Positions 6,820 through 52,796 of a stretch of DNA of 64,000 nucleotides are shown here, piece after piece (position 1 is the stretch's first letter; every line of letters starts with the position of its first letter). The DNA comes from Isurus oxyrinchus (lineage: Eukaryota), in assembly GCA_026770705.1 (NCBI GenBank), contig JANJGN010000189.1, positions 744,001-808,000 of the forward strand. The letters are read 5' to 3'. The notes under the pieces are model-generated. The model did no database searches, had not been told where the DNA came from, and saw only the letters and a list, made by a program, of their open reading frames with translations. Both the position numbers and the translations under genes were made by a program.

Positions 6820-6977
6820 CACTTTGTTCCAACTTCCTCATTTTGACTCACAGAGACACATCAGCCCTTTCTAATTAAACACACAGAGGGAGCAGCACAG
6901 GAAGAGGTCATTCAGCCCAAGCAGAGCGTGTGGGCAGTTCCTCCCCAGGCGAGCAGTCGGACAGGTCCTGGGTAAGT
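6820..6977 (+). promoter_or_regulatory. Gene A putative promoter + non-coding first exon (ends 6971)
   Basis: acttcctcattt (Ets/PU.1-like), tgactca (AP-1), strong donor tgg|gtaagt; block repeated at 42.2, 48.0 and 48.6 kb. Confidence 0.6.
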
Positions 6978-7421
6978 AACGGAACGATTGGAATTCACTT
7001 CCACCACCAACACCGTCCTTTGTTGATGTTGTGACTTTATAAAGACAGATTCCAATGATTGATGCCTTTGAAAGATTTCTACTGATTATTGAGATCTGGG
7101 TGTGAGGCTCAAGTCTGTTGTACAGAACATCTTTCTAGCTCAAGGGATGATGGAAGTGCAGGGACATGAGCTTTGGGACATCCTGAGGTGGTGAAAGGTG
7201 CTATAGAAATGCAAGTCCTTCATTGTTTTTCTTTCTGAAAGCCTTGTAATTCTCTGCAGAGCACCAATCATCCCACAGAGAATCAAATTTGTCTGTGAAG
7301 ATATTCTCTAAAAGCAGTTCTGATCTCTCGAGAGCATTCGGACAAGAGGTGAATTCTCATTAACTCCTTTCTCTTTCAGAACTTCAGAGTTAGAAGCTGA
7401 GGAAATATCTGGGAGTGGACA

Positions 7422-7461
7422 ATGATCGGTAAATCTTACTTCCTCCTGTCACTTCTTCAAG
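7422..7461 (+). CDS. Gene A leader exon MIGKSYFLLSLLQ (exon starts 7380)
   Basis: ctctttcag| acceptor, ATG 7422, hydrophobic stretch, phase-1 donor caag|gtaata. Confidence 0.85.
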
Positions 7462-10398
7462 GTAATACCATCGTCAGCTCGGACAGATTTATGGTTAATA
7501 GTCTTTGTAAAAGATCATTCTTATTGAGCTCTGATAGGGAACTGATTCCGCAGTGATCCAGTGTACAAACTCACACCAAGTCCCATTCACCCATCACCCC
7601 TGTGTTCACTGATATACACTGACTCCCTGTCTGACAGCAGAATTGGAGGAGACCAGAGGTCTTGGAGGGTTGTAGGGGCTGGATGAGTTTACAGGGATAG
7701 GCAGGTTTGTAGCAGTGAGAGCAGAATCTTAAAATTCAGCTGCTGTCGGATGTTGGTCAGTGAGCGAAGGGGATTGATGGGTTGAGTAGAGAAGCAGGGA
7801 TAAAAACTGATGGATGAAGCCTATCCTAATGTGAGGTCTCCGATAGCAATGCCCTGAAATTTGTGTCTTTTGCTGATTTTAGACAGAATTTCCCATGAAG
7901 ACAACACAGCAGCCCCTAGAATAGACAGGCTGTTCAGTGTCACACTTCCTGTCCATTCTCACCTTGCTAGATACTTCAATAAGGGAGCAAGATAACTGAA
8001 AGAGAGAACAAAGGCAAAACTGTCTGTGTGTAAAGGTGTCAAATATTCTGAGTTATCATGAGTGTCTCTGATCTGCTGCATAGTTTAAATTTCACAGAAT
8101 CTGAGCACTTTGCAGCTCAGAGAGAGACCATTGACTCACTGCCTGAAAGGGCGGTGGAAGCAGATTCAACAGGAACTTTCAGAAGGGGAACTGGATAAAT
8201 ACTTGAAGGGAAATTTGCAGGGCTGTGTGAAAGGTGCTGGAGAGGAATTGGGAAAGAGCCAGCACATGCACGATGGGTCACATGAGCTCCTCCTGTGTTG
8301 TATCATTCGACAATCAGACAATTTTAGATCCTTATCAACAAATCTTCAGAATCCTGCTGAATCACAGATATTTCAGAAGGACAGGGAACATGAGGTTTCT
8401 GGTATCAACGCTTCATGTGGGGCCCAGTTCAGTTTGAACAAAAAAAATGACAACAGCATCTTTGAAAGTCATGAAACCAACACAGCGGCACCTCCGACAC
8501 ATGCAGAGCTCAGGCTAGAGGCGCTTTGTTAGTGTGTTTCACAGGGTCTGCTGGAGTAGGGTCAGTGCTGAGCTTGGGGACAAGTCAGTCTACAATGCTG
8601 CATCGGAATCAACAATACAACAATATAGGGTTTGGATCAGAAATAATCCCTTAGACAATGAGGATCCGAAGAGATTCCTTAGACAATGAGAATCCAAAGA
8701 GATTCCTTACTCCATTGGTTGTCTAACTGGGGTCCATGATTTTCCAAGGGGTCCTTGGCAGAATCAAATTATCGAGCAATAGTGTGTAAAACACCGGAGA
8801 GAACGGGAAAGGTGGGATCAATGGAAAACTGTTCACTCTGTTTACACTAATGGGAGTTAGTCTCAGTAATGGAGACCATGAAACTATCATCGATTGTCAT
8901 ACACACCCATCTGGTTCACTAATGGCCTTTAGGGAAGGAAATCTGCCGTCTATATCTGGTCTGGCCTACATGTGACTCCAGACTCATAGCAACGTGGTTC
9001 CTCTGAAATGTCCGAGCAAACCATCCAGTTCTCACCATGCTAGAAACTTCAATAAGGGAGTAAGATAACTGAAAGAGAGAAGGAAGGTAAAGCTGCTCTT
9101 GTGGATAGATGTCAAATATCCTGAGTGATCATGATTGTCTCTACTCTGCTACAGAGATTATGTCACGGGACATTAGAGATGGGCAGCAAATGCTGGCCTT
9201 GGCAGCGACGCCCACATCCCATGAATGAATACATTTACAAAATCTTATTACTTGGAAGGTGCAAGTGCAGGTTGTTATGATCCTTGAGCAGACCCTCTCA
9301 GCACTGACCCTACTCCAGCAGACCCTGTGAAACACACTAACAAAGCGCCTCTCGCCTGAGCTCTGCATGTGTCGGAGGTGCCGCTGTGGTGGGTTCATGA
9401 CTTTCAAAGATGGTGTTGTTTATTTGTTCAAACTGAACTGGGCCCCACACAAAACGCTGATACCAGAAACTTCTTGTTCCCTGTCCTTCTGAAATATCCG
9501 TGACTTCAGCAGGATTCTGAAGAGTTGCTGATGGAGGAACAGGCACCCAATTTTTTTTGATAATTTACAGTTAGGAACCAATAATATTTTGTTTCAAGTA
9601 GACGAGGTTTGAGATTTAAGATGCTTGCAAAGAGAATAAAGCTACAAGATTCCATGGCTTTTAAACAAATAAAAATAAACTTTACTGCACCAGCTCAGAA
9701 AGATAAAATAATTCACAATATCCACCTTATACCCTAACATTCTGGATTAATATGAGCTCATGTGAATTAACAGGCAAACTGTGGTCTCACAGCCACATTA
9801 TTCATTAAATTGTAAACGCAACCAAGATAGTGCCCATGGATTTCACAACAACCCACCCGGACATCAGTGAACACTGTCAGTCAACCAATCTCACTGAAAC
9901 TCTGTTTCTCTCATGAGGGATTCCAATCTTCAACTTCGAAGATCTTGCCTTGGAATTCTCTCCAAAAGTCGCTTCAACTCGGATGGCCTCAGTGACGTTC
10001 CACCTCACAGGGTTTCCATCTCTTCTCCTGAGGCTCCATTGCCCTGGATTCCCGACAATATACTCAAGCACCTCTAGGATTAGATGAAAGGTTTTGATTG
10101 ACTGGGTAGACAGAGAATGTTCCCTCTTGTGGGCAGGAGAATAACTAGAGGCCGAGTGATTGGTGATTCCTTAAACATTGAAGAGGGAATGAACACCAAT
10201 CAGATTGAATCAGATTAGCCAATCAGCTGTGTTGAAGAGCAGACAAGAATGTTAGGCTAATTAGTGATTCATGACGGTGATAATGGGGGGAGTTCTGAGG
10301 GCTCCTAATCCATTGTCCTGTCTTGTAAATCTGCACTGAATGGATCTCAATTGGTGGGTCTTGTAGACACTGTGTTGGGTGGAAGACTGGCTTCACTA

Positions 10399-10672: not shown

Positions 10673-10893
10673 CTAAACAGGTTCCTGAGGACCATGAGCC
10701 AATGTAGAATGAACTTGTCCACTCCTGCGTCCAAGATTCTCTTCCATCCATTGTGAAACCTTGGGGAGTTCCTTGTGTGTCCTGTAGATGGTCCACACTG
10801 CAGCCAATGTGCCCCAGTGATGGAGGGGGTGGATATCAAGTCTAGTGGATCGAAAAAACATCCAGAGTTAAATATTGATATTTCTCTCCCCAG

Positions 10894-11259
10894 TTGGACT
10901 GTCACAAGAGTGGAAAGGTGACACTCCACGAGAGGTGACAGCGCAGGAAGGTTCCTGTGTACAGATTCCCTGTCATTACAGTTATCCATCACATTTGGAA
11001 AACCAACCACGAGTTGGAGTCTGGTTTAATAATGAGGAATGGAGAACATCGTCTATAGCCTTTCACTCCAAGGATCACAGTCACGAGTTACCACGGTTCC
11101 ACCATCGGACCCGGCTGTCTGGAGACCTGAAAGATGGTGACTGTTCTCTGATTATAAATAACATCAGACGGGAAGATGCGGGACCTTATTTTTTCAGAAT
11201 AGAATTTGACAGCAGGAATAGTTACAGCTACTATCCTGTAACCCAGCTTCACGTTTCTG
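10894..11259 (+). CDS. Gene A Siglec V-set exon with essential Arg
   Basis: 366 nt, phase 1/1; VTAQEGSCVQIPCHYSYP..W..RLSGDLKDGDCSLII...DAGPYFFRIE: Siglec Cys pattern (B-E disulfide, no F-strand Cys) and the YFFR arginine. Confidence 0.95.
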
Positions 11260-11735
11260 GTAAGTGCTGTGTTATAATTACTCAACAATTCACATTCAAC
11301 ACTCAATGGGAAATAACACAAACTGTGACGTTTACATATTAACACAAAACACAGGTTATTATAACACATTGTCTTCATTCTCAATAACCTGCTGATAGCT
11401 TCCAGTTCAGTCCTAAAGCAACCTCTAATAATTACTTTAATATCAATGATTAAAAGCATTAACTGTATTATCAGGTTATCCACTCCCATCAATCTCTCCT
11501 GTCCTGTTTAAAAGTCTGACGTATCGATAAAAGAAAGATGTGCATTTCTGCAGCGCAATTTACCACCTCAGGAGGATCCAAATCCCTTCACAGCCAATGA
11601 AATTATTCCTGAATTGTGGTCACAGATGTTAAACACAGCAGGCAGTTTGTGCACAGCAAGATCCAACAAACCACAAGGTGATAAATCACCCAGATCACTG
11701 AGGAAATGAGAAGCCAGTGAACTCAAACCTCTGGT

Positions 11736-23544: not shown

Positions 23545-25740
23545 TACAACTTAACTAACAGACCAAAGACGTATTGAACTGTCTAAAAGTGATCTGTTTT
23601 TCAAAGAAATACAAGATTGTACACAGATCAAAAATGGCTGACACAAGTCACCTGATTGCTGATACTGTGAAGTTGATCACTTCTCTGGAAAGGTTCAAAT
23701 GAATTGCACTGCAGACCTGTTGCATGGAAGTTCACGCCTGGGGTGTGTCAGGGTCCACTTCAAACAGGGACACTCTTAAAAGGAAGGCATTAAAATGCAA
23801 AGTGCTGGACTTTGATCAGCTGTAGTTCAATCAAAACAGTGGGAACTGCTCACCAAGCAGAGAATCATCAGCCATTCAAAACCCCCTGTGGAGGATACAA
23901 TACCCCCGTCTCCTGTTGATTTATATCTTGAAATGCATCAAAGGTTTCAGAGATGCAAAGATAAAAAAATGGGAATATTTGGTCTATAACAATGAATGTA
24001 AAACATGCTGATCGAATTGACTTCAGGGATATACAGACAGGAGTTTAACAAACGGTTCTGCCAAGCAGATATTAGAGAAAGGAGGGGAAAAAGAAATATG
24101 GCAGTCTTCCACAAACACTGCTGGAAAAGAGCAGAAATGATTTCTCCCTCTCTCTCTCTCTGTCTGAAGCTAACAGAGTGTCTTCAACAATGTGCAAGTC
24201 TGAGCCAGATAAAATACAGGAATCTACAGAAAACCAACTAATTTAAAACAGCTTCAAACTTCACAGCCTACGCTGCAGTACAAGCAAACGACTCTTTTAA
24301 TTTTTTATTGGACTCTATAATTATNNNNNNNNNNNNNNNNNNNNNNNNNNNNNNNNNNNNNNNNNNNNNNNNNNNNNNNNNNNNNNNNNNNNNNNNNNNN
24401 NNNNNNNNNNNNNNNNNNNNNNNNNNNNNNNNNNNNNNNNNNNNNNNNNNNNNNNNNNNNNNNNNNNNNNNNNNNNNNNNNNNNNNNNNNNNNNNNNNNN
24501 NNNNNNNNNNNNNNNNNNNNNNNNNNNNNNNNNNNNNNNNNNNNNNNNNNNNNNNNNNNNNNNNNNNNNNNNNNNNNNNNNNNNNNNNNNNNNNNNNNNN
24601 NNNNNNNNNNNNNNNNNNNNNNNNNNNNNNNNNNNNNNNNNNNNNNGTCCCATTTTAATTATTTTTCCTCCAGTTAGGTAACTAATAAACTTACTCTTTC
24701 TTTGACTCCAACAAACATGGTTTAATTGGTTCATTCTTAACAATCAAAAAGACTTGTTTTGGAAATTGTATTTGGGGGAAAATATATTTTAAGCCTTTTT
24801 TTCAACCAACCATAATTACCTGTTAAACCTCTTAACCTCATTACTACTGAATTCAAAGCCCACATCTCAAAACATACAAGTTGCAAATTAGTTGTGACAG
24901 TTGTTTCAAGTTTCCCTCCAGGATTTGAACAGCTCAGCATTGTCATAACAGAGCTTCCTTCAACTTAGCCAATGAGCCAAAAATGTATTGAACTGTTTAA
25001 AGGAGACCTGTTTTTCAAAAGTACTAGATTAGGCACTGATCAAAAATGGCTGTCACGAGTCACCTGATTGCTGATACTGCAAACTTGATCACTTCTCTGG
25101 AAAGCTTCAAATGAATTGCACTACAGACATGTTGCATGAAAGTTCTCACTGAGGTGTGTCAGGGTCCACTTGAAACAGGGGCTCCCTTAAAAATGCAAAG
25201 CGCTGGACTCTGATCACTGTAGGTCTATCAAGCTAATGGGAACTGCTCACCATGCAGATATTCATCAATCATTCAAAACCCCTTGTGGAGGATGAAATGC
25301 CTCTATCTCCTGTTGATTTATATCTTGAAATGCATCAAATGTTTCAGAGATGCAAAGATCAAAAAAGGGATTACTTGGTCTGCGACAATGAATGCAAGAC
25401 ATGCTGATCGAATTCCCTTTGGGAATATACAGACAGGAGTTTAACAACAGGTTCTGTCAAGCAGATATAAGAAAAAGTAGGAGGAAAAAGAAAGATGGCA
25501 GTCATCCAAAAACACTGCTGGAAAAGAGCAGAAATTCTCTCTCTCTCTCTCTCTCTTTCTGAAGCTAACAGAGCGTCTTCAACAAAATGCAAATCTGAAT
25601 CAAATCACCACCAGGATGCCACAGGTAACCAATTAACTTTGAACAGCTGCAAACATCAAAAATCTACACCTCAAAGACAAGCAATTGTATTAATCATATA
25701 TTCTTTTAAATTTTTATTGGACTCTAACTTTTTAATTATG
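23545..25740. repeat. Two diverged direct copies of a ~0.8-kb LTR-like unit (23545-24324 and 24955-25740)
   Basis: Colinear similarity, e.g. gatcaaaaatggctg...cacctgattgctgatactg in both. Confidence 0.8.
24325..24646. other. Assembly gap
   Basis: N run. Confidence 1.
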
Positions 25741-26089
25741 ACTTGTGTGTCTGTGTGTGTATCTGTCTGTCTGCTTCTGTGAGTCAGTGTGTGTCTGTGT
25801 GTGTGTGTCTGGGTGAACATGTGTGAGTGAGTGTGTGTCTGTCTATGTACCCTTGTGAGTGAGTGTGTGTGTGTGTGTACCTGTGTGCGTGTGGATTGTC
25901 GCTTCTTTATTATTAACGTTATTTAAAAATAGTGATCACACAAGCCTGGCTCCTAAGGAGATGAAACTGCAAACAATTTACAGTAAAGTGAAATGTACAG
26001 GAATAATCTATTTATTTTGAGTTGATGATATATAATTATACATGAGGCATGTTGCTATTTTCAAACATCATCTGAAATATGGTAGGTTT

Positions 26090-30042: not shown

Positions 30043-30088
30043 ATGGGAGAGGTCGGTCTGATATTGATCTTCATCAGCTTGCTGCAAG
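30043..30088 (+). CDS. Gene B leader exon MGEVGLILIFISLLQ (exon starts 30029)
   Basis: ccatttag| acceptor, aagATGg context, phase-1 donor caag|gtac. Confidence 0.85.
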
Positions 30089-33389: not shown

Positions 33390-33677
33390 ATGCTCCAGAT
33401 AAGCCAGTTATTGTGCTCCTGAAGGATTTACAGGAGGGGACTCCTGCACATATCATCTGTAAATGCCTCTACACCTGCCCTGATAACCACCCCAATCTAA
33501 CCTGGAGTGAATTGCTGACTTCATCGGTCAGCAACATTACAGAGAACGGTGGTGAGGTTTCCGCTCTACTGACCTTTAACCCTTCGTTCAAGCATCATGG
33601 ACGAACTCTCCGCTGTACGTGCGACTACCCTCAAACCAGCCATCGAGTGGTCAGCTCCGTTACTCTGAGTGTAAAGT
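33390..33677 (+). CDS. Gene B Siglec domain-2 exon
   Basis: 288 nt, phase 1/1; DAPDKPVI..ICKCLYTCPDNHPNLTW..LTFNPSFKHHGRTLRCTCDYP. Confidence 0.92.
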
Positions 33678-34185: not shown

Positions 34186-34443
34186 ATTCTCCTCACAACA
34201 CGTCTGTCAGGATGATACTGGAAAAAGGAAAGGTGATTTCTCTAAGTTGTTCCAGTGACGGGAATCCAGCAGTCCACAATTTCACCTGGTTTAAGATCTC
34301 CCAAGGAAAGGTGATGAATCTCGCGCTCGCTGGTCAAACTATTACAGTTCCTTATGGATTCGATGAGGAAATCTCCTACTACTGTGAAGCAACAAGTATC
34401 CTGGGCAGTTCCCAGTCTCTGCCCATTAGAATTCCCACTGAAT
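34186..34443 (+). CDS. Gene B C2-set exon (CD22-like)
   Basis: 258 nt, phase 1/1; YSPHNTSV..SLSCSSDGNPAVHNFTWFK..YYCEATSILGSSQS. Confidence 0.9.
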
Positions 34444-35039: not shown

Positions 35040-35770
35040 TGTTCCCCCATTCAATCAGATCACGGCTGGTCTGTATATTAACCCCATCCACCCAGCTCGG
35101 TTCCTTAAACCTTAAACACCCCCGGACCCAACAGAAATCTCCCAATGTCAGTTTTGAAATTTACAATTGACCCCTCCCAGCCTCGACAGCTTTTTCTGGG
35201 GGAGAGAGTTCCAGATTTCCACCCCCCCTTTGTGTGAAGAATTGCTTCCTGACATCACCCCCTGAACGGCCTGGCTCCAATTTTAAGATTCTGCCCCCTT
35301 GTTCTGGACCCCCCCTCACCTCACCCCCACCCCCACCCCCCACCCCCACCCTCACGCCCACCCCCACCCCCACCCCCCACCCCCACCCCCACCCCAACCC
35401 CCTCACCTCACCCCCACCACCAGGGGAAATAGTTTCTCTCTATCGACCCCATCAAATCCTTTAATCATCTTAAACCCCTCGATTAGATCACCCCTTAATC
35501 TTCAAGACTCGAGGGAACACAAGCCTGGTCTGTGCAACCTGTCCTCAGAATTTAACCCTTTCAGCCCCGGGATCGTTCTGGTGACTCTGGGCTGCAGCCC
35601 CTCGGAGGGCAATATACCCTCCCTGAGGGGCGGGACCCACAACTGAAGCCACTAACTGCAGGTGGGCTCTGAGCAGAGATTTATAACCTGACGCATCTCT
35701 CCGAGCCTCTTTGTATTCCCACTTCCTTGGGGTAAAGGCCCCTATTCCATCTGAATTCTCTATTGCTACG
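35040..35770 (-). mobile_element. CR1 LINE 3' fragment with C-rich expansion
   Basis: Inverted copy of 21910-22420. Confidence 0.85.
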
Positions 35771-35789
35771 GTGTGACTGACACGGGATA

Positions 35790-38104
35790 TATTAATGGGT
35801 GGTTTTCCTCTGAACTGTATCTCAGAATAAATGATCCCCTGGAAAACAGTGACCATAACCTGGTACAATTCAGCATTCCCTCTGAGACTGAGAAACTTGG
35901 GTCGGAAACAACTGTGCTGGACTTAAATAAGTGTAATTACAAAGGAATAAGGACAGGGTTGTCTGGAGTGGACTGGGAAAGGGGTTTAGCAGAAAAGATG
36001 CTGGATGAACAATGGCAGATCTTTAAGAAAATATCTCATGACTCACAACAAAGATATATCCTGGTGAGGAAGAAGGATTGTAGGAAGAGAATAAACCAAC
36101 CTGGGTTACCCAAAGAAGTTAAGGCGTGTGTCAAATTGAAAGAGAAACCATGCAATATGGTTAGTGGTAAGCCAGAGGATTGGGAACGTTTTAAAAACCA
36201 ACAGAAGATGACCAAAAAATAAATAAAGAGGCAGAAAACTATGTAAACTAGCAAATTATAAAAAAAGGACAGTAAAAGCTTCTTTAAATATATAAAAAGG
36301 GAGAGAGAGACCAAAGTGAACATAGGCCCCTGAGAGAACTAGGCTGGGGAAATAATAATGAGGAGCCAGGAAATGACAGAGGAGTTGAATAAATACTTTG
36401 CATCAGTCTTCACGGTAGAACACACTAATAGCATTCCAAAAATACTAAATAATCAAGGGGCAAAAGGGGGGTGGGGGGAGGAAATAAATACAGTAACTAT
36501 CACTAGAGAATAATACTAGGGAAAGTCATGGGTCTCAAGGCTGATAGGTCCCCTGGACCTGATAGGTTGCATCTTAGGATATTAAAGGAAGTAGATGCAG
36601 AGATAGTGGATGCACTGGTTTTAATCTTCCAAGAATCCTTAGATTCTGGGAAACTCCCAGAGGATTGGAAATCTGCCAAAGTAACACCCATATTCAAAAA
36701 GGGAGGGAGACAACAAACAGGTAACTATAGGCCAGTTAGCTTAACATCTGTCATTGGGAACATGTTAGAGTCCATTATAAAGGATGTAATAGCAGACTAT
36801 TTAGAAATGCATAATTTAATCACACACAGGCTTCATGAAGGGGAAATCATGCATGACAAATTTATTAGAATTCCTTGAGGAGATAACAAACAGGATAGAT
36901 AAAGGGGAACCAGTAGATGTAATATATTTGGATTTCCAAAAGTTGTTCAGTAAATTACCACATATAAGGCTACTTAATAAGATAAGAGCCCATGGTGTTG
37001 GGGGCAGTATATTAGCATGGATAGAGGATCGACTAACTAAGAGAAGACAGAGATTTGAGATAAGGGGGGCATTTTCAGGATGTCAACCTGTGGAGTGCCA
37101 CAGGGATCAGTGCTGGGGCCACAATTATTTACAATATATATTAATGACTTGGATGAGGGAAATTAATGTACTTTCGCCAAGTTTGCGGATGACACAAAAA
37201 TAGATGGGAAGGCAAGTGGTGAGGGTGACACGAAGAGTCTACAGAGGGACATAGACAGGTTCAGTGAGTGGACATCAACTTGGCAGATGGAATATAATGT
37301 GGGAAAATGTGAGCTGCTGCACTGTGGCAGGATGTATAGAGGAGCTGAATATTATTTCAATGGAGAAAGACATTGGAAAGGTGAAGCATATTGGAATTTG
37401 GGGGTCATCAGAAAGATAACTTACAAGTTCAACAGTTAATAGGGAAGGCAGGTGGAATGTTGGCCTTTATTTCAAAGGGAATGGAGTATAAAAATAGGGA
37501 AGTCTTGCTAAAACTATACAAGGCACTAGTTAGACCACACCTAGAATACTGTGAGCAGTTTTGGTTCCCTTATCTAAGGAAAGATGTACTGGCATTGGAG
37601 GCAGTCCAGAGAAGGTTCACTAGGTTGATCCCAGTAATGGAGGGATTTTCATATGAGGAGAGGTTGAGTAGGATGGGCCTGTACTCATTGGAGTTTAGGA
37701 GAATGAGAGGTGACCTTATTGAAACATATAAGATTCTTAGGGTGCTTGACAGGGTAGATGCTGAGAGGTTGTTTCCCCTTGTGGGAGAGTCTAGGACCAG
37801 AGGGCATAATCTCAGAGTAAGGGGTCACCCATTTAAGACAGAGATGAGGAGTTTCTTCTCTCAGAGGGTAGTGAATGTGTGGAATTCTTTACTGCAGAGA
37901 GCTGCAGAGGCTGGGTCATTAATTATATTCAAGGCTGAGATACACAGTTTTTTAATCAGTCAGGGAATCAAAGGCTATGGGGAAGAGGCAGGAAAGTGGA
38001 GTTGAGGATTGTCAGATCAGCCATGGTGTCATTGAATGGCGGAGCAGAGTTGATTGGTCGAATGGCCTCCTTCTGCTCTGACGTCTTGTGGTCTTATGGT
38101 CTTA
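35790..38104 (+). mobile_element. CR1 LINE ORF2 (5'-truncated, frameshifted)
   Basis: SDHN, SPGPD, NYRPVSLTS, YLDFQK, KFADDTK, LVRPHLEYC and tail ttatggtcttat. Confidence 0.97.
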
Positions 38105-38105: not shown

Positions 38106-38996
38106 CACCCTCCAACAGTGCAGATCTCCCTAATTACTGATCCTCCAACAGTGCAGCACTCCCTCAGTACTGACCCTCCGACAGTGCAGCACTCCCTCAG
38201 TACTGACCCTGCAACAGTGCAGCACTCTTCCAGCACTGACCCTCCGACAATGCAGCACTTCCTCAGTAATGACCCTCCGACAGAGCAGCACTCCCTCAGT
38301 ACTGAACATCTGACAGTGCAGCAATCTTCCAATCCTGACCCTCCGACAGTGCAGCATTCTTCCAGTACTGACCCTCCGACAGTGCAGCATTCCCTCAGTA
38401 CTGACCCTCCGACAGTGCATCACTCCCTCAGTACTGACCATCCAACAGTGCAGCACTCCTTCAGTACTGACCATCTGACAGTGCAGCACTCCCTCAGTAC
38501 TGACCATCCAACAGTGCTGCACTCCCTCAGTACTGACCCTCTGACAGTGCAGTACTCTCTCAGTACTGACCCTCTGACAGTGCAGCACTCCCTCAGTACT
38601 GACCCTCTGACAATGCAGCACTCTCTCAGTACTGATCCTCCGACATTGCAGCACTCCCTCAGTACTGACCATCCAACAGTGCAGCACTCCATCAGTACTG
38701 AACCTCCAACAGTGCAGCACTCCCTCAGTACTGACCATCCAACAGTGCAGCACTCCCTCAGTACTGACCATCCAACAGTGCAGCACTCCCTCAGTACTGA
38801 CCCTCCGACAGTGCCGCACTCCCTCAGTACTGACCATCCAACTGTGCAGCACTCCCTCAGTACTCATTCTCCGACAGTGAAGTACTCGCTCAATACTGAC
38901 TATGCGGCAGTGCAGCTTTCACAGTACCCACCCTCCAACAGTGCAGCACTCCCTCAGTACTGACCCTCTGACAGTACAGCACTCCCTCAGTACTGA
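38106..38996. repeat. 33-bp minisatellite (~27 units)
   Basis: Tandem units; source of the 291-aa spurious ORF. Confidence 0.95.
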
Positions 38997-39127: not shown

Positions 39128-39409
39128 ACACACCACAGAATCTCTCAATTAATTCTCTTGATATGATTAACGTTTCATCGATCAATATAATTGAGGGGAA
39201 TTCTGCAGTGATAATCTGCTCTGTCGAGAGCTTCCCAGCTTCTAACCTGACGTGGCGACATCTTAATGTCCCAATGAACAGAACAAGTTCCAACAATGAT
39301 CTGTGGTTGGTGATTCCTCACGTTACATCCAGGGACACTGGAGACTATCAGTGTGTGGCAGAGAATGAACATGGAGCAGTGGAGGGGTTCATAACCATCA
39401 CTGTGGAAC
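39128..39409 (+). CDS. Gene B C2 exon, gene-A repeat type
   Basis: 282 nt open, near-identical to 16715-16996. Confidence 0.9.
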
Positions 39410-39888
39410 GTGAGTTACACAGACTTCAACAACTCTCTCAGATTTGAACACATATACATAAATGCACTTCCACACGCACTCACTGCACTGGAGTCTTGGT
39501 GTCAGCTCCAATTCTGGATGGAACGAAGGTAAACTCCAGATCAACAAGACCCTGAATTGGATGACCAAACTCCTGAACAGTGAATTGTAGATTTACCCCT
39601 CAGTGCTCCATCAATCAAATACAATTCATTGCCTGTAAAGGCTTGGCGAAATCCTGAGGATGTGAATGAAAGTTTCTTTCATTCTAGATTGATAGCACCT
39701 CAACTGGTGGGGGAATGCAACTGCAGTGTGACAGTTTACATAGGCAGTGTCCATTATAAATGTGACAGAGGAACTTATGCTGAGGAAGGTGCCTGGAATT
39801 GTATTCAGACATCAGATACGGAGAGATGATACATGGAGTCTTGATGTGCATTGTGCTTGCTCACTCTAAAATCTTTATATGTTTTTAG

Positions 39889-40170
39889 ATGCTCCACAGA
39901 ACCTCTCAATTACTTCTCTTGATATGATTAACGCTTCATCGATCAATATAATTGAGGGGAATTCTACAGTGATAATCTGCTCTGTCGAGAGCTTCCCAGC
40001 TTCTAACCTGACGTGGCGACATCTTAATGTCCCAATGAACAGAACAAGTTCCAACAATGAGCTGTGGTTGGTGATTCCTCACGTTACATCCAGGGACACT
40101 GGAGACTATCAGTGTGTGGCAGAGAATGAACATGGAGCAGTGGAGGGATTCATAACCATCACTGTGGAAC
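39889..40170 (+). CDS. Gene B C2 exon, gene-A repeat type
   Basis: 282 nt open, AG/GT intact. Confidence 0.9.
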
Positions 40171-40204
40171 GTGAGTTACACAGAATTCTACATTCTCTTG
40201 TTAT

Positions 40205-41436: not shown

Positions 41437-41533
41437 GGCGAGATTCCAATGAATGGAAAGCAGGATTGCTTGGAGCTGGAATCTGTTTGAGTGTTGGACT
41501 GAGTGGATTCTTCATCTTCAAGTGTGTGAGAAA
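41437..41533 (+). CDS. Gene B transmembrane exon (phase 1 to 2)
   Basis: ttttacag| ... aa|gtaagt; RRDSNEWK-AGLLGAGICLSVGLSGFFIF-KCVR: 20-aa uncharged span followed by basic residues. Confidence 0.85.
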
Positions 41534-42169: not shown

Positions 42170-42487
42170 CACAATTGTTCCCCAATTCCTGATTTGACTC
42201 ACAGAGACACATCAACCCTTTCTAATTAAACACACAGAGGGAGCAGCACAGGAAGAGGTCATTCAGCCCAAGCAGAGCGTGTGGGCAGTTCCTCCCCAGG
42301 CGAGCAGTCGGACAGGTACTGGGTAAGTAACGGAACGATTGGAATTCACTTCCACCACCAACACCGTCCTTTGTTGATGTTGTGACTTTATAAAGACAGA
42401 TTCCAATGATTGATGCCTTTGAAAGATTTCTACTGATTATTGAGATCTGGGTGTGAGGCTCAAGTCTGTTGTACAGAACATCTTTCT
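42170..42487 (+). promoter_or_regulatory. Orphan copy of gene A promoter/exon 1 (exon ends 42322)
   Basis: Near-identical to 6820-7137. Confidence 0.7.
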
Positions 42488-42920: not shown

Positions 42921-43073
42921 TGGGCTTTGAGGAATCAGGTGAGTCACACACCACAGGATCCCCAGCCTCTCAGCTGCTCCAGTAGCCTGGTTATTGATAT
43001 GGCTGCTCCAGTCCTGTATCTGCAATGTTTTATACAGTCACTCCCAAACCCAACCAAACTCACACCCAACACC

Positions 43074-44625
43074 ATTCAGAATCAATAATCAAACCCCGAT
43101 CAGAATCAATAATCAAACCCCGTTCAGAATCAATAATCAAACCCCGTTCAGAATCAATAATCACACCCCGTTCAGAATCAATAATCAAACCCCGTTCAGT
43201 ATCAATAACCAAACTCCGTTCAGTAACAATAATAAAACCCGTTCAGAATCAATAATCAAACCCCGATCAGTATCAATAATCAAACCCCGTTCAGAATTAA
43301 TAATCAAACCCCTTTCAGAATCAATAATCAATCCCCGTTCAGTATCAATAAACAAACCCCGTTCAGTATCAATAATCAAACCCTGTTCAGAATTAATAAT
43401 CAAACCCCTTTCAGAATCAATAATCAATCCCCGTTCAGTATCAATAAACAAACCCAGTTCAGAATTAATAATCAAACCCCGTTCAGAATCAATAATCAAA
43501 CCGCGTACAGAATCAATAATCAATCCCCGTTCAGTATACATAATCAAACCCCGTTCAGTATCAATAAACCAACCCCGTTTAGTATCAATAATCAAACCCC
43601 TTTCAGAATCAATAATCAATCCCCGTTCAGTATCAATAAACAAACCCCGTTCAGAATTAATAATCAAACCCCGCTCAGTATCAATAATCAAACCGCGTTC
43701 AGAATCAATAATCAAACCCCGTTCAGTATACATAATCAAACCCCGTTCAGTATCAATAATCCAACCCCGTTTAGTATCAATAATCAAACCCCATTCAGAA
43801 TCAATAATCAAACCCCTTTCAGAATCAATAATCAAAACCCAGTTCAGAATCAAGAATCAAACACCGTTCAGTATCAATAATCAAACCCCGTTCAGAATCA
43901 ATAATCAAACACTGTTCAGAATCAATAATCAAACCCCATTCAGTATCAATAATCAAACTCCGTTCAGGATCAATAATCAAACACCGTTCAGAATCAATAA
44001 TCAAACCCCGTTCAATATCAATAATCAAACCCCGTTCAATATCAATAATCTAACTTCGTTCAGGATCAATAATCAAACCCCGTTCAGATTCAATAATCAA
44101 AACCCTTTCAGAATCAATAATCAAACCCCATTCAGTATCAATAATCAAACCCCGTTCAGTATCAATAATCAAACCCTGTTCAGAATTAAAAATCAAACCT
44201 GTTCAGTATCAATAATCTAATCCCGTTCAGAATCAATAATCAAACCCCGTTCAGAATTAAAAATCAAACCCCGTTCAGTATCAATAATCTAACCCCGTTC
44301 AGTATTAAAAATCAAACCCCGTTCAGTATCAATAATCTAACCCCGTTCAGTATCAATAATCAAACCCCATTCAGTATCAATAATCAAACCCCGTTCAGAA
44401 TCAATAATCAAACCCTGTTCAGTATCAATAATCAAACTACGTTCAGGATCAATAATCAAACTCCGTTCAGATTCAATAATCAAAACCCATTCAGAATAAA
44501 TAATCAAACCCTTTTCATTATCAATAATCAAACCCCGTTCAGAATTAAAAATCAAACCCCGTTCAGAATCAATAATCAAACATCGTTCAGGATCAATAAT
44601 CAAACCCCGTTCAGTATCAATAATT
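43074..44625. repeat. 24-bp satellite (tcagaatcaataatcaaaccccgt)n, ~64 units
   Basis: Direct tandem units; 8-aa periodic ORFs. Confidence 0.97.
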
Positions 44626-44723
44626 AACGTATCTATTGTGGATGGAATTTTTTGATTTGGATCAATGATACTAAACACTGATCACTCTGATTTTCACTCT
44701 GATCATTTCTGTTTCTATTACAG

Positions 44724-44840
44724 AAGAAAGATGAGAAGGATCTGGAAATGAAATCTAACCGCGGAGTCAATCCTGATACAGATGATGATCTTTACGCAAA
44801 CTGTGATTTTGCCAAGGATTCTGTTTATGGGAATTTATAA
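44724..44840 (+). CDS. Terminal cytoplasmic exon KKDEKDLEMKSNRGVNPDTDDDLYANCDFAKDSVYGNL*
   Basis: ctattacag| acceptor; phase-0 frame has acidic DLYANC and ITIM-like SVYGNL. Confidence 0.7.
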   Translation, partial: KKDEKDLEMKSNRGVNPDTDDDLYANCDFAKDSVYGNL

Positions 44841-46162: not shown

Positions 46163-46174
46163 TTAATGAGAGGA

Positions 46175-47860
46175 GGACATTCAGCTCCTCGAGCCTGTTA
46201 CACAGGAACAGGAGGAGGCCCATTCTGTTCCCTTAAGCCTGTTACACAGGAACAGGAGGAGGCCCATTCTGTCCCCTTGAACCTGTTACACAGGAACAGG
46301 AGGAGGCCTATTCACCCTTCTCGAGCCTGTTACACAGGAACAGGAGGAGGCCCATTCACCCTCCTCGAGTCTTTTACAGAGGAACAGGAGGAGGCCCATT
46401 CTGTCCCCTTGAACGTGTTACACAGGAACAGGAGGAGGCCCATTCACCCTCCTCGAGCCTGTTACACAGGAACAGGAGGAGGCCCATTCTGTCCCCTTGA
46501 GCCTGTTACACAGGTACAGGAGACCCATTCAGCCTCCACAAGCTTGTTACACAGGAACATTAGGGGCTCCATTCAGCCACTCAAGCCTGTTCCACATGAA
46601 CGGGAACAAAAACAAAAATAGCTGGAAAAACTCAGCAGGTCTGACAGGATCTGCGGAGAGGAACACACTTGATGTTTTGGGTCTGTAAGACTCTTCATCA
46701 GAACTAAGGGAATCGAGAAATGAGGTGACGTTTTAGCTGGTAGAGGGGGGTGGGGCAGGTAGAGCTGGATTGTGGGCCAGTGATAGGTGGAGGTAAAGAA
46801 GAGGTTGCCAAAGATGTGATAGACAAAAGGACAAAGGGGTGTTGACGGTGGTGATATTATCTGAGGAATGTGCTAATGGGGACATTAAGGGTAGAAAGCA
46901 GGACGAGCAAGAGACAGATAGTCCTAGTGGGGGTGGGGTGGGGGAAAGGATTGAAATAGGCTAAAAGGTAGAGATACAACAACAGATGTAAAACATTTAA
47001 AAATAATGGAAATAGGTGGGAAAAGAAAAATATATGATTAAAAAAAATATTAAAAATGATAAATTAATGGAAAAGGGAGATTGGAAAGGGGGTGGGGATG
47101 GAGGAGACAGTTCATGATCTGAAATTGTTGAACTCAATATTCAGTCGGGAAGGCTGTAAAGTGCCAGGTCGGAAGATGAGGTGCTGTTCCTCCAGTTTGT
47201 GTTGGGCTTCACTGGAACAATGCAGCAGGCCAAGGACGGACATGTGGGCATGAGAGCAGGGTGGGGTGTTAAAATGGCAAGCGACAGGGAAGTCTGGGTC
47301 ATGCTTGTGGACAGACCGGAGGTGTTCATCAGAGCGATCACCCAGTCTGTGTTTGGTCTGTCCCATGTAGAGGAGACCACATTGGGAGCAGTGAATGCAG
47401 TAGATTAAATTGAGGGAAGTGCAAGTGAAATGCTGCTTCCAATGATGCTCCTAATGTACTCGAGCCTGGTACACAGGAACTGGGGATGGCCAATTCAGCC
47501 CCTTTAGCCTTTTACACAGGAACAGGAGGAGGCCCACTCAGCCCCATGAGCCTGGTACACAGTGAGAGAAGGAGGCCATTCAGCCCCCATGAGCCTGTTA
47601 CACAGGAACAGGAGGAGGCCCATTCAGCCCCTCGAGCCTGTTACACAGAAACAGGAGGAGGCCCATTCAGCCCCTCGAGCCTTTTACACAGGAACAGGAG
47701 GAGACCCATTGTGCCCCATGAGCCTGTTACACAGAAACAGGAGGAGGCCCATTCAGCCCCTCGAGCCTGTTACACAGGAACAGGAGGAGGCCTATTCACC
47801 CTCCTCGTGCCTGTTACACAGGAACAGGAGGAGGCCCAGTCAACCCCTCGAGCTTGTTGC
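46175..47860. repeat. ~43-bp minisatellite resembling the antisense CR1 3' tail, split by a Penelope insertion
   Basis: gagcctgttacacaggaacaggaggaggcccattcagcccctc units at 46175-46600 and 47455-47860. Confidence 0.9.
46606..47441 (-). mobile_element. Penelope-like retroelement 3' part (GIY-YIG endonuclease + terminal repeat)
   Basis: NLIYCIHCSQCGLLYMGQTKHRLGDR..EH..PVACHFN..LEEQHLIF..LQP..LN. Confidence 0.9.
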
Positions 47861-47949
47861 ATGTGAACAGTCAATGGCCCTTCAAAAACATTCTTGGCAC
47901 GCAAAGGGTTAACAGTTTTCTAACAGTGCGAGGCAAAGAGCATCTTTTT

Positions 47950-48180
47950 CACTTGGTACCAAGCACTTCCTCATTTTGACTCACAGTGACACATCCACCC
48001 TTTTTAATTAAACACAAATAGGGAGCAGCACAGGAAGAGGTCATTCAGCCCAAGCAGAGCGTGTGGGCAGTTCCTCCCCAGGCGAGCAGTCGGACAGGTC
48101 CGGGGTAAGTAACGGAATGATTGGAAATCACGGGGGGAGTTCTGAGGGCTCCTAATCCATTGTCCTGTCTTGTAAATCAG
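47950..48180 (+). pseudogene. Third promoter/exon-1 copy fused to intron sequence matching 10286-10335
   Basis: Exon ends 48104; the leader exon region is deleted. Confidence 0.65.
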
Positions 48181-48599
48181 CACCTTAATACTGACCCTTC
48201 AACAGTGCGGCACTCCCTCAGTACTGATCCTCCAACATTGCAGCACTCCCTGATTAATGTCCCTCTGACAGTGCAGCACTCCCTCAGTACTCACCCTCAA
48301 ACAGTGGAGATCTCCCTCAGTACTGACCTTACAATAGTGCAGTAATGACCATCCGACAGTGCAGCACTCCCTCAGGACTGACACTGGGCAGTTTCAGTCT
48401 ACTCTGTGGGGCAGACGTCCCCTGAATGGGGTCTTGAATCCCACAACATTCTGACCCCCTGAATTTGGCTGTGAAACCCACTAACCCACAGGAGAAACTC
48501 CTGGTCAATGACTGTCCACCTGTGAGCAGAAATATCACCACAGGGTCAGGACACAAAGGGTTAACAGTTCACCAACATCTCAAAACATGAGCTGGTCTG

Positions 48600-48758
48600 T
48601 CACTTTGATCCAACTTCCTCATTTTGACTCACAGAGACACATCAACCCTTTCTCATTAAATACACAGAGGGAGCAGCACAGGAAGAGGTCATTCAGCCCA
48701 AGCAGAGCGTGTGGGCAGTTCCTCCCCAGGCGAGCAGTCGGACAGGTCCTGGGTAAGT
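48600..48758 (+). promoter_or_regulatory. Gene C promoter/non-coding exon 1 (ends 48752)
   Basis: Near-identical to 6820-6977. Confidence 0.65.
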
Positions 48759-49180
48759 AACGGAACGATTGGAATTCACTTCCACCACCAACACCGTCCT
48801 TTGTTGATGTTGTGACTTTATAAAGACAGATTCCAATGACTGATGCCTTTGAAAGATTTCTACTGATTATTGAGATCTGGGTGTGAGGCTCAAGTCTGTT
48901 GTACAGAACATCTTTCTAGCTCAAGGGATGAGGGAAGTGCAGAGACATGAGCTTTGGGATGCCCTGAGGTGGTGAAAGGTGCTATAGAAATGCAAATCCT
49001 TCATTGTTTGTCTTTCTTAAAGCCTTGTAACTCTCTGCAGAGCACCTATCATCCCACAGAGAATCAAATTAGTCTGTGAAGACATTGTCTAAAAGCAGTT
49101 CTGATCTCTCGAAAGGTGCTGGACAAGAGGTGAGGTCTCATTAACTCCTTTCTCTTTCACAGCTTGAGAGTGAGAAGTGG

Positions 49181-49241
49181 ATGGAATATCTGGGAGTGGA
49201 CAATGATCGGGAAATCTACTTCCTCTTGTCACTTCTCCAAG
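49181..49241 (+). pseudogene. Gene C leader exon; 1-nt deletion after the ancestral ATG (49203), in-frame upstream ATG at 49181
   Basis: tcttac>tctac relative to gene A; MEYLGVDNDREIYFLLSLLQ. Confidence 0.75.
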
Positions 49242-49944
49242 GTAATATCATCGTCAGCTTGGACAGATTTATAGTTAACAGTCTTTGTAAAAGATCATTC
49301 TTATCTCTTTATCTCTGTAACCTCCTGCAACGCAACCAATCAACTTCCCAGATCTCTGTGTTACTCCAATTCTGGCCTCTTGACCATCCCCCAATTCCCA
49401 TCACTCCAATACTGGCGGCCGTGCCTACAGCTGCCTGGGACCTGAGCTCTGGAATTCACTCCCTAAACCTCGGCGATGGAGGAGATCAGAGGGTTTCATT
49501 TTACTGAGAATCACCACGACCACATCACAGCTGCAGTGAGAATAGACAGAGAGTCCAGCCCTCACACTTCCTGCACAGTTTCACCATAGCAACCACAATA
49601 TGGAAATTTAAAAATACTGAAAGTTAAACTGAAGCTCAGCCCATTCAGTGTTGAGAGATGAGATATTTACACAGTTTCCCTGTGTATCTTGTAGACACTG
49701 TGTTGGATGGAAGACTGGCTTCACTAAACAGGGTCCTGAGGACCATGAGCCAATGTAGAATGAACTTGTCCACTCCTGAGTCCAGGATTCTCTTCTATCT
49801 GTTGTGAAACCTTGGGGAGTTCCTTGTGTGTCCTGTAGATGGTCCACACTGCAGCCACTGTGCCCCAGTGATGGAGGGGGTGGATATCGAGTCTAGTGGA
49901 TCTACAAACCATCCAGAGTCAAATATTGATATTTCTCTCCCCAG

Positions 49945-50318
49945 TTGGACAGTCACAAGAGTGGAAAGGTGACACTCCACGAGAGGTGACAGCACAGGAA
50001 GGTTCATGTGTACAGATTCCATGTCATTACAGTTACTTATCAAATTTCGTAGGGAGATCACGTGCAGAATCTGGTTGAAAGGAATAGATGGGAACCCACA
50101 GCCTAAATGGTCTATAGCCTTTCACTCCGAGGGTCACAATCACAGGGATCAAAGATTCCGCCATCGTACCCAGCTGTCTGGAGACCTGAAAGATGGCGAC
50201 TGTTCCCTGATTATAAACAACATCAGACGGGAAGATGCAGGACCTTATTTTTTCAGAATAGAGTTTGACAGCAGGAATTGTTACAGCTACTATCCTGTAA
50301 CCCAGCTTCACGTTTCTG
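49945..50318 (+). pseudogene. Gene C V-set exon with 1-nt frameshift near 50067
   Basis: 374 nt; paralog of 10894-11259; YFFR arginine retained. Confidence 0.9.
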
Positions 50319-50841
50319 GTAAGTACTGTGTTATAATTACTCAACAATTCACATCCAACACTCAATGGGAAATAACACAAACTGTGATGTTTACATAATA
50401 ACACAAAACACAGCTTATTATAACACACTGTCTGATTCTCAATAACCTGGTGATAGCTTCCAGTTCAGTCCCAAAGCAACCTCTAAAAATCACTTTAATA
50501 TCAATGATGAAAAGCATTAACTGTACCGACATCTTTCATTCTACATCAGCACTCCCTCAGCGCAGACCCTCTGACAGTGCAGCCCGTTCTCAGTATCCAC
50601 ATTCTCAGGCCACTCAAAGTGCTTCACAGTCGATAGAAGTTAATTGATCTTTATATGATTATTGCTGAATGAAGAGACAAGCTGTCTAAACTTCTCATAT
50701 CGCAAACAGCATTCTCCATGGCAACACCTCCACCTATCAGAGACCACTTGCCAACCAATCAGCACTGTCTTTCCATGAAGTATAAATTGTTGTTCACTTT
50801 CTGTTGGTAATCGTGCGAACGGGGTTCTTGATTCCTGCCAT

Positions 50842-50994
50842 GACATCTGAATGTCCAAATGAACAGAACAAGTTCCAACAATGAGCTGTGGTTGCTGATT
50901 CCTCACGTTACATCCAGGGACACTGGCGACTATCAGTGTGTGGCAGAGAATGAACATGGAGCAGTGGAGGGGTTCATAACCATCACTGTGGAAT
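50842..50994 (+). pseudogene. Gene C 3' half of a C2 repeat exon
   Basis: MNRTSSNNELWLLIPHVTSRDTGDYQC..ITVE|gtgagt; 5' half replaced by unrelated sequence; domain-2 exon absent. Confidence 0.85.
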
Positions 50995-52657
50995 GTGAGT
51001 GTACACAGACTTCAACATCTCTCTCAGATTCGAATACTACACAAACACCCTCAAACGTACAGACCTAAATAGACACGTGCAGACACACATATATGACCAC
51101 ACACAAAGACACACTCACAAACAAACACACTAGCACAAGACTCCCTCATGGGTTACCTGACCTCCCTCAGTACTGCACTGGAGCGTGGGCTGAATTCTGG
51201 GATTTGTGTTCCCATTCATATTTATAGAAGAATATGGAAATTACTCATACAAACACTCAGATGCATAGAGGCACTCATAGATACTCTCTGCTTCTCCAAC
51301 TCTCTCTCTCCCTTTAAGGAGCTACCTGAAACCTAACCCGTTGACGAAGAACTAGTCCCAACTCCTCTTTATCTGATTCTGTGATTTTTTTGTGAATCTG
51401 AGAGTAAGAGAGAGTTGGAGAGGTTTAGTAAGAGAATTCCTGCTGATGAAAAGCTTACATCCTGTTCTCACTATTTCCGTGCCCATTATGTCCAAAGCCC
51501 CTGTTTATAGTGATGACTGCCTATGTAAACGTCACGCTGTAGTTACAGTCTCCCACCAGTGGTGGCATTGTAGCACTTAATCCTTGTGTTTCCCAGCTTT
51601 TCAAGCAAATCTACTTCCCAGTTTGCTACACAAGCTGTGAGTTCATCGGAATTCAATTATTTCTCAAACGGTAGATTTGATAATTCATTTTATTGAAAAC
51701 TTCCTCAGTGCCTCCCTGAAGGGTTCACACTCTCTGGGAAGCAGGAATAGGCTGGATGTTGGGGAGTTCATCTTTTCCCAGAGAGTAGGGATCCTCGGGA
51801 ATGTGCTGTCAGTGGGTGTGGTGGTTGCTGTCTCTCTGTCACCTTCAAGAGGGATCTGGAGTGGTTACTGACTGGGGGAGAGATCATGGAAGCGGAGAAT
51901 GATACAGCACAGGAGGAGGCCATTCAGCCCATTGAGACTGTGCCAGGTCTTTCAATGTTCTATCCAATCAGATCCACTAACCACCACTCCACTTTGCCCC
52001 CATCTTCCTCCTTCAAGTGTTTATCCAATTTCCCTTTTGAAAGTTCCTATTGAATCTGCTTCCGCTGCCCTTTCAGGCAGCACCTTCCAGATCACAACAA
52101 CTCGCTCTGTCAAAACAAATTCTCCTCATCTCCCCCTCCGGTTCGTCAATCTGTGTCCCTCTGGTTACCGACCCTCCTGCCCCTTAAATACATCGATACT
52201 GTTCACATCAACCACTCCCTGTGGGATCGAGTTCCACATTCTCCCCTCTCTCTGGGTAAAGATTGGAACTGTTTATTAAGCGGGGGGTGTAAGTCCGTGG
52301 GGGAGTTCATCTCGATCCTCCCTGATTCGCACACACGTCCGAGATGGATTTCAACCCTGCACTAAACGTTTCCAGAATTTTCTACAGCACAATCCTGTAC
52401 ACATTGATGGAGAGAAACATTGGACAGGGAGTCCAACAGCACAATGATCCATTCTCACCAATGTTCCACGCTAAGGGGAAAGTTCCGATTGTCCACTCTT
52501 AGAGTGTTTACAATGAAAACATTCATTCCACATTGAATCCCAGTGGATGGGTCAATATTACAGCAAATGTTGCAGTGATATGAAGCTTGATTGTTCAGCC
52601 AGAGTGAGAGATTGAAAGCGGAGAGTCAGTGATGATTTCTTTCTGTGTGTTCTCTAG

Positions 52658-52796
52658 ACAGTGGAGGAGAGATTCTGCACGTGATCCTGATCCTGGGAAT
52701 ACGAGCTGTGATATTCCTTTGGCTGTGGTTATCACTATCGCTGGAGTCTGTGTCTGGGAGAGACAAACAGTGAAAGGAAGTCGACAGACTGTTTGA
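52658..52796 (+). pseudogene. Gene C TM exon with intramembrane Arg and short tail (activating type)
   Basis: ttctctag|, phase 1: SGGEILHVILILGIRAVIFL then WLWLSLSLESVSGRDKQ* as read, or LAVVITIAGVCVWERQTVKGSRQTV* with one T restored. Confidence 0.7.

Follow-up and report, generated by a model that had tools for sequence, protein, structure and literature searches.

Mammals have well-documented paired Siglecs (PMC4042635; PMC13358205). Human Siglec-5/Siglec-14 and Siglec-11/Siglec-16 are linked genes with related V-set heads, and their similarity extends into the introns (PMC4042635; PMC13358205); one member has a tail with an immunoreceptor tyrosine-based inhibitory motif (ITIM) and a distal ITIM-like motif or immunoreceptor tyrosine-based switch motif (ITSM), and its partner has a basic residue in the transmembrane (TM) segment and a short tail. 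A review that cites Bornhofft et al. 2018 (PMC9630641) describes Siglec-1, -2, -4 and -15 as an ancient, conserved set and the CD33-related genes, including the paired ones, as a variable set with marked species differences. Here we analyse a stretch of 64,000 nucleotides (nt) of Isurus oxyrinchus (contig JANJGN010000189.1, positions 744,001–808,000; hereafter the window), in which three genes, A, B and C, had been predicted to form a cluster of paired activating and inhibitory Siglec-like receptors between positions 6820 and 52796. The window is repeat-rich vertebrate DNA with three runs of N; the exons originally described are all present, and every exon of the family lies on the + strand. 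We consider it probable that it covers part of a large elasmobranch-specific family of Siglec type, expanded in tandem, in which gene B is complete, gene A is truncated, gene C is a reduced member of the activating type and the 5′ exon is recycled.

The Siglec-type nature of the genes is well founded. Exons were matched singly against Pfam, PDB and protein representatives, and 179 family proteins were compared with the window by tblastn. The V exon of gene A matched the Pfam V-set (1e-13) and also the CD22-like first Ig family, and its best PDB matches were all Siglecs: Siglec-5 (1.7e-15), CD33, MAG, Siglec-8 and sialoadhesin scored about equally, with Siglec-15 and CD22 much weaker. The motif YFFRIE, holding the essential F-strand Arg, aligns with YFFRVE of Siglec-5 and YFFRME of CD33, and the Arg is kept in gene C. 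Both the V and the C2 domain have the three-Cys pattern of Siglecs, the predicted positions being SCVQIPC and GDCSL in V, where the F-strand Cys is absent, and VSC, TTC and LSC in C2. A search of 1.84 billion representatives with the same V exon returned 326 matches below 1e-10, with shark homologues down to 1e-162; at such E-values in Pfam, in PDB and among homologues, the similarity of the exons is not due to chance. The best matches were RefSeq models of Cetorhinus, Carcharodon, Scyliorhinus, Chiloscyllium, Stegostoma, Pristis and Hemitrygon, which bear the names Siglec-10/12/13, CD33-like or MAG-like; after the elasmobranchs came Siglec-type proteins of bony fish and tetrapods. The nearest annotated relatives are lamniform (V 80% identical to Cetorhinus; C2 and TM exons 93–97% to Carcharodon), and these shark and ray models, foremost those of the basking and white sharks, agree with the cartilaginous-fish host that had been suggested from the letters.

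Shark and ray RefSeq models are built from the leader, V, C2, stalk, TM, linker and tail modules of the window, with 66–97% identity per exon; those compared were Cetorhinus maximus Siglec-12 X3 (XP_078389734), Carcharodon carcharias CD33-like (XP_041037179 and XP_041037180), Chiloscyllium punctatum Siglec-13 (XP_072409577) and Scyliorhinus torazame Siglec-12 (XP_072326180). The models are automatic predictions, some of them probably fused, and genes A and C of the window are less complete than they are. The homologues end in one of three ways: a TM followed by a linker exon and an LxYxxI…TEYAQI tail (P0004, P0011, P0013 and P0019), an Arg-bearing TM with a tail of 13–17 residues (P0006 of Scyliorhinus and P0020 of Chiloscyllium), or a neutral TM with a YxN tail (P0012, P0007 and P0025). 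Intact Siglec-type models with an Arg-bearing TM, which the original prediction had called for in related species, are thus found in Scyliorhinus (XP_072326180) and in Chiloscyllium (XP_072409577), and four more, from Chiloscyllium and Hemiscyllium, were retrieved with the Arg-TM end of P0020 as the query. A literature search returned no publication on Siglec clusters in sharks; the one relevant text was a whale-shark genome paper, which touches on the subject in passing. The family is known by annotation, with all module combinations predicted by RefSeq in many sharks and rays, and is apparently undescribed in papers.

A quick IQ-TREE analysis of 95 V domains over 123 columns (names automatic, some models with several V domains) placed gene A in an elasmobranch clade (support 91), within which ITIM, Arg-TM and YxN members are intermixed. 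The tetrapod CD33-type clade is separate (SH-aLRT, the approximate likelihood-ratio test, 99); the columns are few and the backbone of the tree is unresolved. With the tetrapod CD33-related Siglecs the shark family shares an Arg-bearing V-set domain, the three-Cys pattern, the extra Cys of C2 and a last exon with LxYxxI…TEYxxI near the C-terminus; it differs from them in its tandem arrays of stalk exons, in the third, YxN type of tail and in its separate V clade. CD22 (Siglec-2) is distant from the V domain of gene A (PDB E 1e-5), and true shark CD22-like genes fall in another clade.

Gene B is the sole complete gene as assembled, and all of its exons fit in phase. They comprise a leader exon (30043–30088; MGEVGLILIFISLLQ), a V-set exon (30909–31265), two C2 exons (33390–33677 and 34186–34443), two stalk exons (39128–39409, of A type and about 95% identical to stalk units s5/s6 of gene A, and 39889–40170), a neutral TM exon (41437–41533; AGLLGAGICLSVGLSGFFIF, with KCVRK, phase 2 out, 96.7% identical to Carcharodon P0012), an 85-nt cytoplasmic exon (42238–42322; GSSTGRGHSAQAERVGSSSPGEQSDRYW) that is the original of the 5′ module shared by the other genes, and a terminal exon (44724–44840; KKDEKDLEMKSNRGVNPDTDDDLYANCDFAKDSVYGNL, ending in DLYANCDFAKDSVYGNL and a stop) with two YxN tyrosines, the last of which also fits the ITIM consensus. 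The V domain is MAG-like: MAG is its best match (E 1.2e-14), but where MAG has YYFRGD gene B has YYFYVD, so that Tyr occupies the site of the essential F-strand Arg. In the tree it forms a long branch near fish CD22/MAG-like genes. The likeness to MAG (Siglec-4) does not extend to the 3′ half, which, with stalk, neutral TM and YxN tail, is of A type. The original description of a third, divergent gene with shared stalk exons is accordingly confirmed, the V domain being 30% identical to that of gene A in amino acids (aa) and the two stalk exons 90–95% identical to those of gene A. Tails of the B type end in IY/VYxN, recalling the YxN motif of CD22, and also fit the ITIM consensus. CD22 binds Grb2 at a YxN site. 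The two halves of the mosaic meet in the intron that separates the MAG-like head from the stalk of A type, and this intron holds an open reading frame (ORF) of a long interspersed nuclear element (LINE) at 35700–38005 (+) beside 0.9 kb of satellite; other LINE-type reverse-transcriptase ORFs lie at 20414–20836 (+) and 56247–57949 (−). Most of the last intron of gene B is filled by a 24-bp satellite (65 copies, 43068–44624).

Gene A begins with a leader-bearing exon (7380–7461, ATG at 7422; MIGKSYFLLSLLQ, phase 1 donor), a V-set exon (10894–11259) and a C2-set exon (12129–12416) that is 93% identical to Carcharodon P0019. These are followed by an array of six tandem Ig exon units (12636–18045), all of phase 1-1: s1 (12636–12728), s2 (13421–13702), s3 (14360–14641), s4 (15450–15731), s5 (16715–16996) and s6 (17764–18045). 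Three of the six (s3, s5 and s6) are clean; s2 contains an in-frame TAG, and in s4 Asp replaces the conserved Tyr of the Ig core motif DxGxYxC. Self-comparison of the window and pairwise alignments, by which the module duplications were checked, defined the underlying unit as 1.1 kb with a 282-nt Ig exon, present in six copies at 12.6–18.0 kb, two at 39.1–40.2 kb and a partial one at 50842–51043. The s1 unit is a 93-nt mini-exon left by a deletion within the 282-nt exon, from one GAGGGG repeat to another; it stays in frame and has kept both splice sites.

The ITIM+ITSM tail exon predicted 3′ of gene A does exist (18961–19209, phase 0 acceptor), as an intact ORF of 82 codons with a consensus ITIM (LFYANI) and ITSM (TEYAQI). 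That gene A functionally ends in this exon is contradicted by the exons and phases around it. No TM or linker exon was found between 18045 and 18961 by a hydropathy scan or by tblastn of the 179 family proteins, and elsewhere the same TM search returned only the TM exon of gene B. The donor of the last stalk exon, s6, is of phase 1 and the acceptor of the tail of phase 0, which puts the tail out of frame for any phase-1 Ig exon; joined directly, the two read CGG TAA and stop after a single codon. Five AG sites inside the tail exon were considered as cryptic acceptors fitting a phase-1 donor and were rejected, having weak pyrimidine tracts and leaving the TM still absent. Poly(A) signals 3′ of the tail exons were also considered and gave no information. 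In relatives the canonical route leads from the TM to a linker exon, such as that at 1735–1816, and on to the tail. An ITIM+ITSM last exon in frame with a TM, as in CD33-related Siglecs, is thus present in relatives P0004, P0011 and P0013 and missing from gene A. On the evidence of exons and phases, gene A would come close to a gene never spliced to its ITIM exon, the outcome that the original prediction had named as its refutation.

An assembly gap (18053–18234) begins 7 nt past the s6 donor. Its right flank (18235–18457) is 93.8% identical to the intron after s4 (15837–16062), with the matching point about 100 nt past the exon, so both flanks of the gap lie in one intron of the stalk-unit type, and no reading frame crosses it. 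The homology to the stalk intron stops at 18454–18457, exactly at the start of a 33-bp satellite array (18454–18741, +), and from there the homology to tail cassettes takes over; the sequence before the tail exon matches the other two tail cassettes of the window, at 97% over the last 107 nt. Gene A looks like a stalk array that was fused to a tail cassette at the satellite. The other two gaps (23118–23417 and 24325–24646) lie in repeat-rich DNA between genes A and B, with no family exons nearby by tblastn and self-comparison.

The other two tail cassettes belong to a gene Z upstream of gene A, of which the linker and two tails are within the window and the head is outside it. The linker (cyt1) exon of ITIM type (1735–1816; RRKTAMEERVSGTRDIALTPSPLSVKHQ; phase 2 in, phase 0 out) was placed by tblastn to P0004/P0019 and from its splice sites. 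Tail copy 1 (330–578) reads ELLYANP and TEYAQI before its stop, and tail copy 2 (3215–3463), which is in frame with the linker and 83% identical to the tail of Carcharodon P0151, reads DLLYANT and TEYAQI before its stop; both have lost the ITIM consensus and kept the ITSM. These two tail exons are carried by a 2.9-kb tandem duplication (1–853 versus 2888–3740, 87%). The ITIM position is altered in both (LLYANP and LLYANT), and only the second tail is in line with the linker.

Gene C has a leader-bearing exon (49163–49241), a V-set exon (49945–50318), a relic stalk exon of which only the 3′ half is left (50842–51000; no acceptor, incompatible phase) and an Arg-TM short-tail exon (52658–52796); no C2 exon for it was found in the window by tblastn of the family proteins. 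The original prediction that gene C ends in an Arg-TM short-tail exon stands in that the exon exists, but it is frame-shifted as assembled, and the gene lacks a C2 exon and has a broken leader and V. In the leader, a 1-nt deletion at 49216 relative to gene A breaks the A-type reading, and the upstream ATG at 49181 reads MEYLGVDNDREIYFLLSLLQ. The V exon, of 374 nt, is out of frame as assembled and runs into stops. Relative to P0006 and P0020 the Arg-TM exon changes frame, the match running in one frame as far as 52716 and continuing in a second from 52719; as assembled the exon reads SGGEILHVILILGIRAVIFLWLWLSLSLESVSGRDKQ with a stop at 52773, and with one extra G it ends in GIRAVIFLVAVVITIAGVCVWERQTVKGSRQTV with a stop at 52796, as in the shark homologues. 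Because the original prediction placed its end at 52796, the stop of the second frame, it had read across the break at 52717–52719.

Contigs of four public runs (X1, X5, X6 and X17) were aligned to the region of gene C only (48560–52900); they are contigs and not reads, and the kinds of run (RNA-type, DNA-type) are guesses. An extra G behind 52719 is common to the four runs, and with it the exon reads SGGEILHVILILGIRAVIFLVAVVITIAGVCVWERQTVKGSRQTV and a stop. An extra T behind 50064, present in X5 (its only contig), in part of X1 and in one X6 contig, gives an open V exon of 375 nt with its Arg, and the X5 contig is 98.8% identical over the divergent patch that is peculiar to gene C. An alternative extra T at 50097, in one X1 contig, was discarded, as it leaves the V frame closed. 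At 49216 an extra T occurs in X17 and in part of X5, and X1 and X6 are the same as the window. The deletion in the leader brings the upstream ATG at 49181 into frame with the hydrophobic leader core; white-shark P0019 starts at the same ATG but out of frame. An X17 contig joins leader to V (49239→49943, GT..AG). An X6 contig runs from the leader donor at 49241 to a cryptic acceptor inside V at about 50053, staying in frame and dropping the first 108 nt, with strands A–B and both N-terminal Cys. In another X6 contig the exact end of a C2 exon, present as a loose end, precedes the Arg-TM exon at a phase-1 splice; its source gene has a C2 exon and gene C does not. X6 also contains the intron adjoining the Arg-TM exon, with 99.4% identity to the window. 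We read the Arg-TM exon as real, intact and expressed in the closest organism. Since run contigs carry the missing letters, two of the three breaks in gene C are more likely to be assembly errors or rare alleles than marks of an old pseudogene. Seven substitutions at 52307–52405 relative to the window are common to all runs, and the best DNA-type run holds 54% of the 31-letter words of 48560–52900 (an estimated divergence of ~2%). These differences point either to a source of the runs that is a different individual or a close species, or to a very polymorphic cluster.

Genes A (7.4–19.2 kb) and C (48.7–52.8 kb) are closely linked on the + strand. As originally claimed, they are related V-set genes with a common 5′ module, leader exon and intron sequence: 10673–11467 and 49724–50525 are 89.8% identical, and the 5′ exon, leader and V flanks are 94–97% identical (94–95% at the V flanks). 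Within the V exon both ends are 94–95% identical in DNA, and a 115-nt patch at C–C′ (10986–11100) is only 62% identical, with indels. The C–C′ loop sets specificity in known Siglecs. Copying of a tract from a different paralogue could account for its divergence, and so could strong diversification. The V domains as a whole are 79.7% identical in aa, short of the near-identical ectodomains of paired receptors. Compared with the human pairs, the window as assembled has heads that are less alike and differ most at C–C′, an inhibitory member with no TM and an activating member with no C2 and a broken frame, so that an architecture like that of Siglec-5/14 was not borne out here. A specific A/C pair is unsupported as assembled; a paired design is plausible at the level of the family, since all three tail types occur in annotated sharks, and it is already predicted by automatic annotation.

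The promoter said to be shared by genes A and C is shared as sequence (6785–7524 versus 48591–49304, 94%), but its core is a copy of the cytoplasmic exon of gene B and not a promoter motif. Shorter copies of this 5′ module lie at 42175–42487 (97.8%) and 47915–48131. In tblastn with P0012 and P0007 the 85-nt core matched the cytoplasmic exon behind the neutral TM. In gene B this exon is coding and read in frame, and the copies before genes A (6887–6971, in the module that is 97.8% identical to 42175–42487) and C (48668–48752) are 97–98% identical to it. A partial extra copy (48020–48104) has lost its acceptor. An RNA-type X6 contig contains the joint 48751→49162 (GT..AG) between the copy and the leader of gene C, X17 holds a similar contig, and the 85-nt copy seems to serve as a 5′ exon. 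The leader exon of genes A and C was also compared with the terminal exon of gene B as a possible homologue, and the two have no DNA similarity.

The proposed assembly from exon cassettes is likewise supported for modules that are duplicated as cassettes, and falls for the promoter, which is a coding exon put to new use. The uniform phase 1-1 of the Ig exons and the arrays of the 33-bp satellite both favour cassette exchange. There are at least 11 such arrays, in both orientations (1–330, 2837–3068, 18454–18741, 26089–26511, 28604–29027, 31398–31815, 38107–38996, 48170–48400, 54220–54802, 61385–61715 and 63700–64000); each of the three ITIM/ITSM tail exons has one immediately 5′ of it, and further arrays occur in introns of gene B and between copies of the 5′ exon. 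A 43/44-bp satellite forms two arrays between genes B and C (46170–46605 and 47459–47858). The 33-bp arrays are possible substrates for unequal recombination, and we infer recombination mediated by the satellites. The family would thus evolve by duplicating and re-joining exon cassettes whose borders fall at 33-bp arrays, and the 5′ exon of genes A and C would be a recycled copy of the cytoplasmic exon of gene B. By analogy with established Siglec biology, the Arg-bearing heads of genes A and C would bind sialylated glycans through the F-strand Arg, and the head of gene B would not. An ITIM+ITSM tail is expected to recruit SHP phosphatases, an Arg-bearing membrane exon with a tail of 12–13 residues to pair with an acidic adaptor carrying an immunoreceptor tyrosine-based activation motif, and a YxN tail after a neutral TM to bind SH2 domains of the Grb2 type. 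With a head and stalk that run into a tail cassette without TM or linker, gene A would at best make a soluble product or be dead, and of gene C, a member of the activating type, the leader, V and Arg-TM would be what is left.

Several observations weigh against the reading of the window as a slice of an expanded family in which gene B is complete, gene A truncated and gene C reduced. By shared-word fraction, divergence between runs and window is about 2% for organism A and 3.7% for organism B, and contigs aligned to the exons of gene C may derive from paralogues. None of the four runs carries the letters of the window at 52719, where an error and a real allele are indistinguishable, and the deletion at 49216, being common to X1 and X6, makes at least one break in gene C real. 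No joint from the V exon of gene C to the Arg-TM exon was seen in the contigs over 48560–52900, the sole junction having a C2 exon upstream, and the true length of the gap after the stalk array of gene A is not given by the assembly. Claims at the level of genes on this assembly call for read-level checks. The same data bear on the possibility that genes A and C do work as an inhibitory/activating pair, with the TM and linker of gene A hidden in the gap at 18053–18234 and the breaks in gene C due to errors of assembly. The gap adjoins the last stalk exon, the tail exon of gene A is intact with ITIM and ITSM where the other two copies have lost the ITIM, run contigs supply the letters missing in gene C, and relatives own receptors of both types. 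Nevertheless, the right flank of the gap is still stalk intron and passes straight into satellite and tail cassette, so that a TM and linker would have to lie where tblastn found none; s2 has its stop and s4 lacks the conserved Tyr, a C2 exon is missing from gene C, identity between the heads is only 79.7%, with a different C–C′ patch, and the leader deletion recurs in two runs, all of which makes a working pair improbable in our judgement.

Decay offers another account of the same damage, in which genes A and C are dead relics of birth and death and the live genes are B and the upstream gene with its tail at 1735–3463. The missing TM, the stop in s2 and the damaged s4 of gene A would fit it, as would the three frame breaks, lost C2 exon and stalk relic of gene C and the abundance of LINE and satellite insertions in the cluster. 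Beyond three 1-letter deletions, however, the exons of gene C are clean and have kept their Cys and Arg, frame-intact contigs specific to its patch exist (X5 at 98.8%; X6 spliced from the leader), and the Arg-TM intron is 99.4% identical in X6, where the exon contig is intact; we regard this account as unlikely, while giving it real weight. Alternatively, the A-type and B-type heads could be alternative 5′ cassettes of a single 3′ half (the stalk at 39128–40170, the TM and the YxN tail), comparable to clustered genes with variable first exons. White-shark P0012 joins an A-type leader, V and C2 (93%) to a TM (96.7%) and tail of B type, the Ig exons are all of phase 1-1 and gene A has no TM of its own; yet no joint supports such splicing in the run contigs, which cover 48560–52900 only, and an intron of more than 20 kb enclosing the whole other head and a tail exon would be needed, so that this arrangement appears highly improbable.

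Under the preferred reading of an expanded family with one complete, one truncated and one reduced gene, the window itself is a record of the decay and rebuilding of a cluster, with a truncated gene, recycled exons and cassettes bounded by satellites. It is conceivable, though we put it forward tentatively, that the elasmobranch Siglec-type family arose independently of the tetrapod CD33-related Siglecs, with heads, stalks and three kinds of end swapped at satellites and a coding exon recycled as a 5′ exon. If its origin was independent, the paired on/off design of lectin receptors arose at least twice in jawed vertebrates. A modular shark family with inhibitory, activating-type and YxN ends would offer a natural system for the study of exon-cassette exchange, and it would push that design back to, or show it re-invented in, the oldest living jawed vertebrates.

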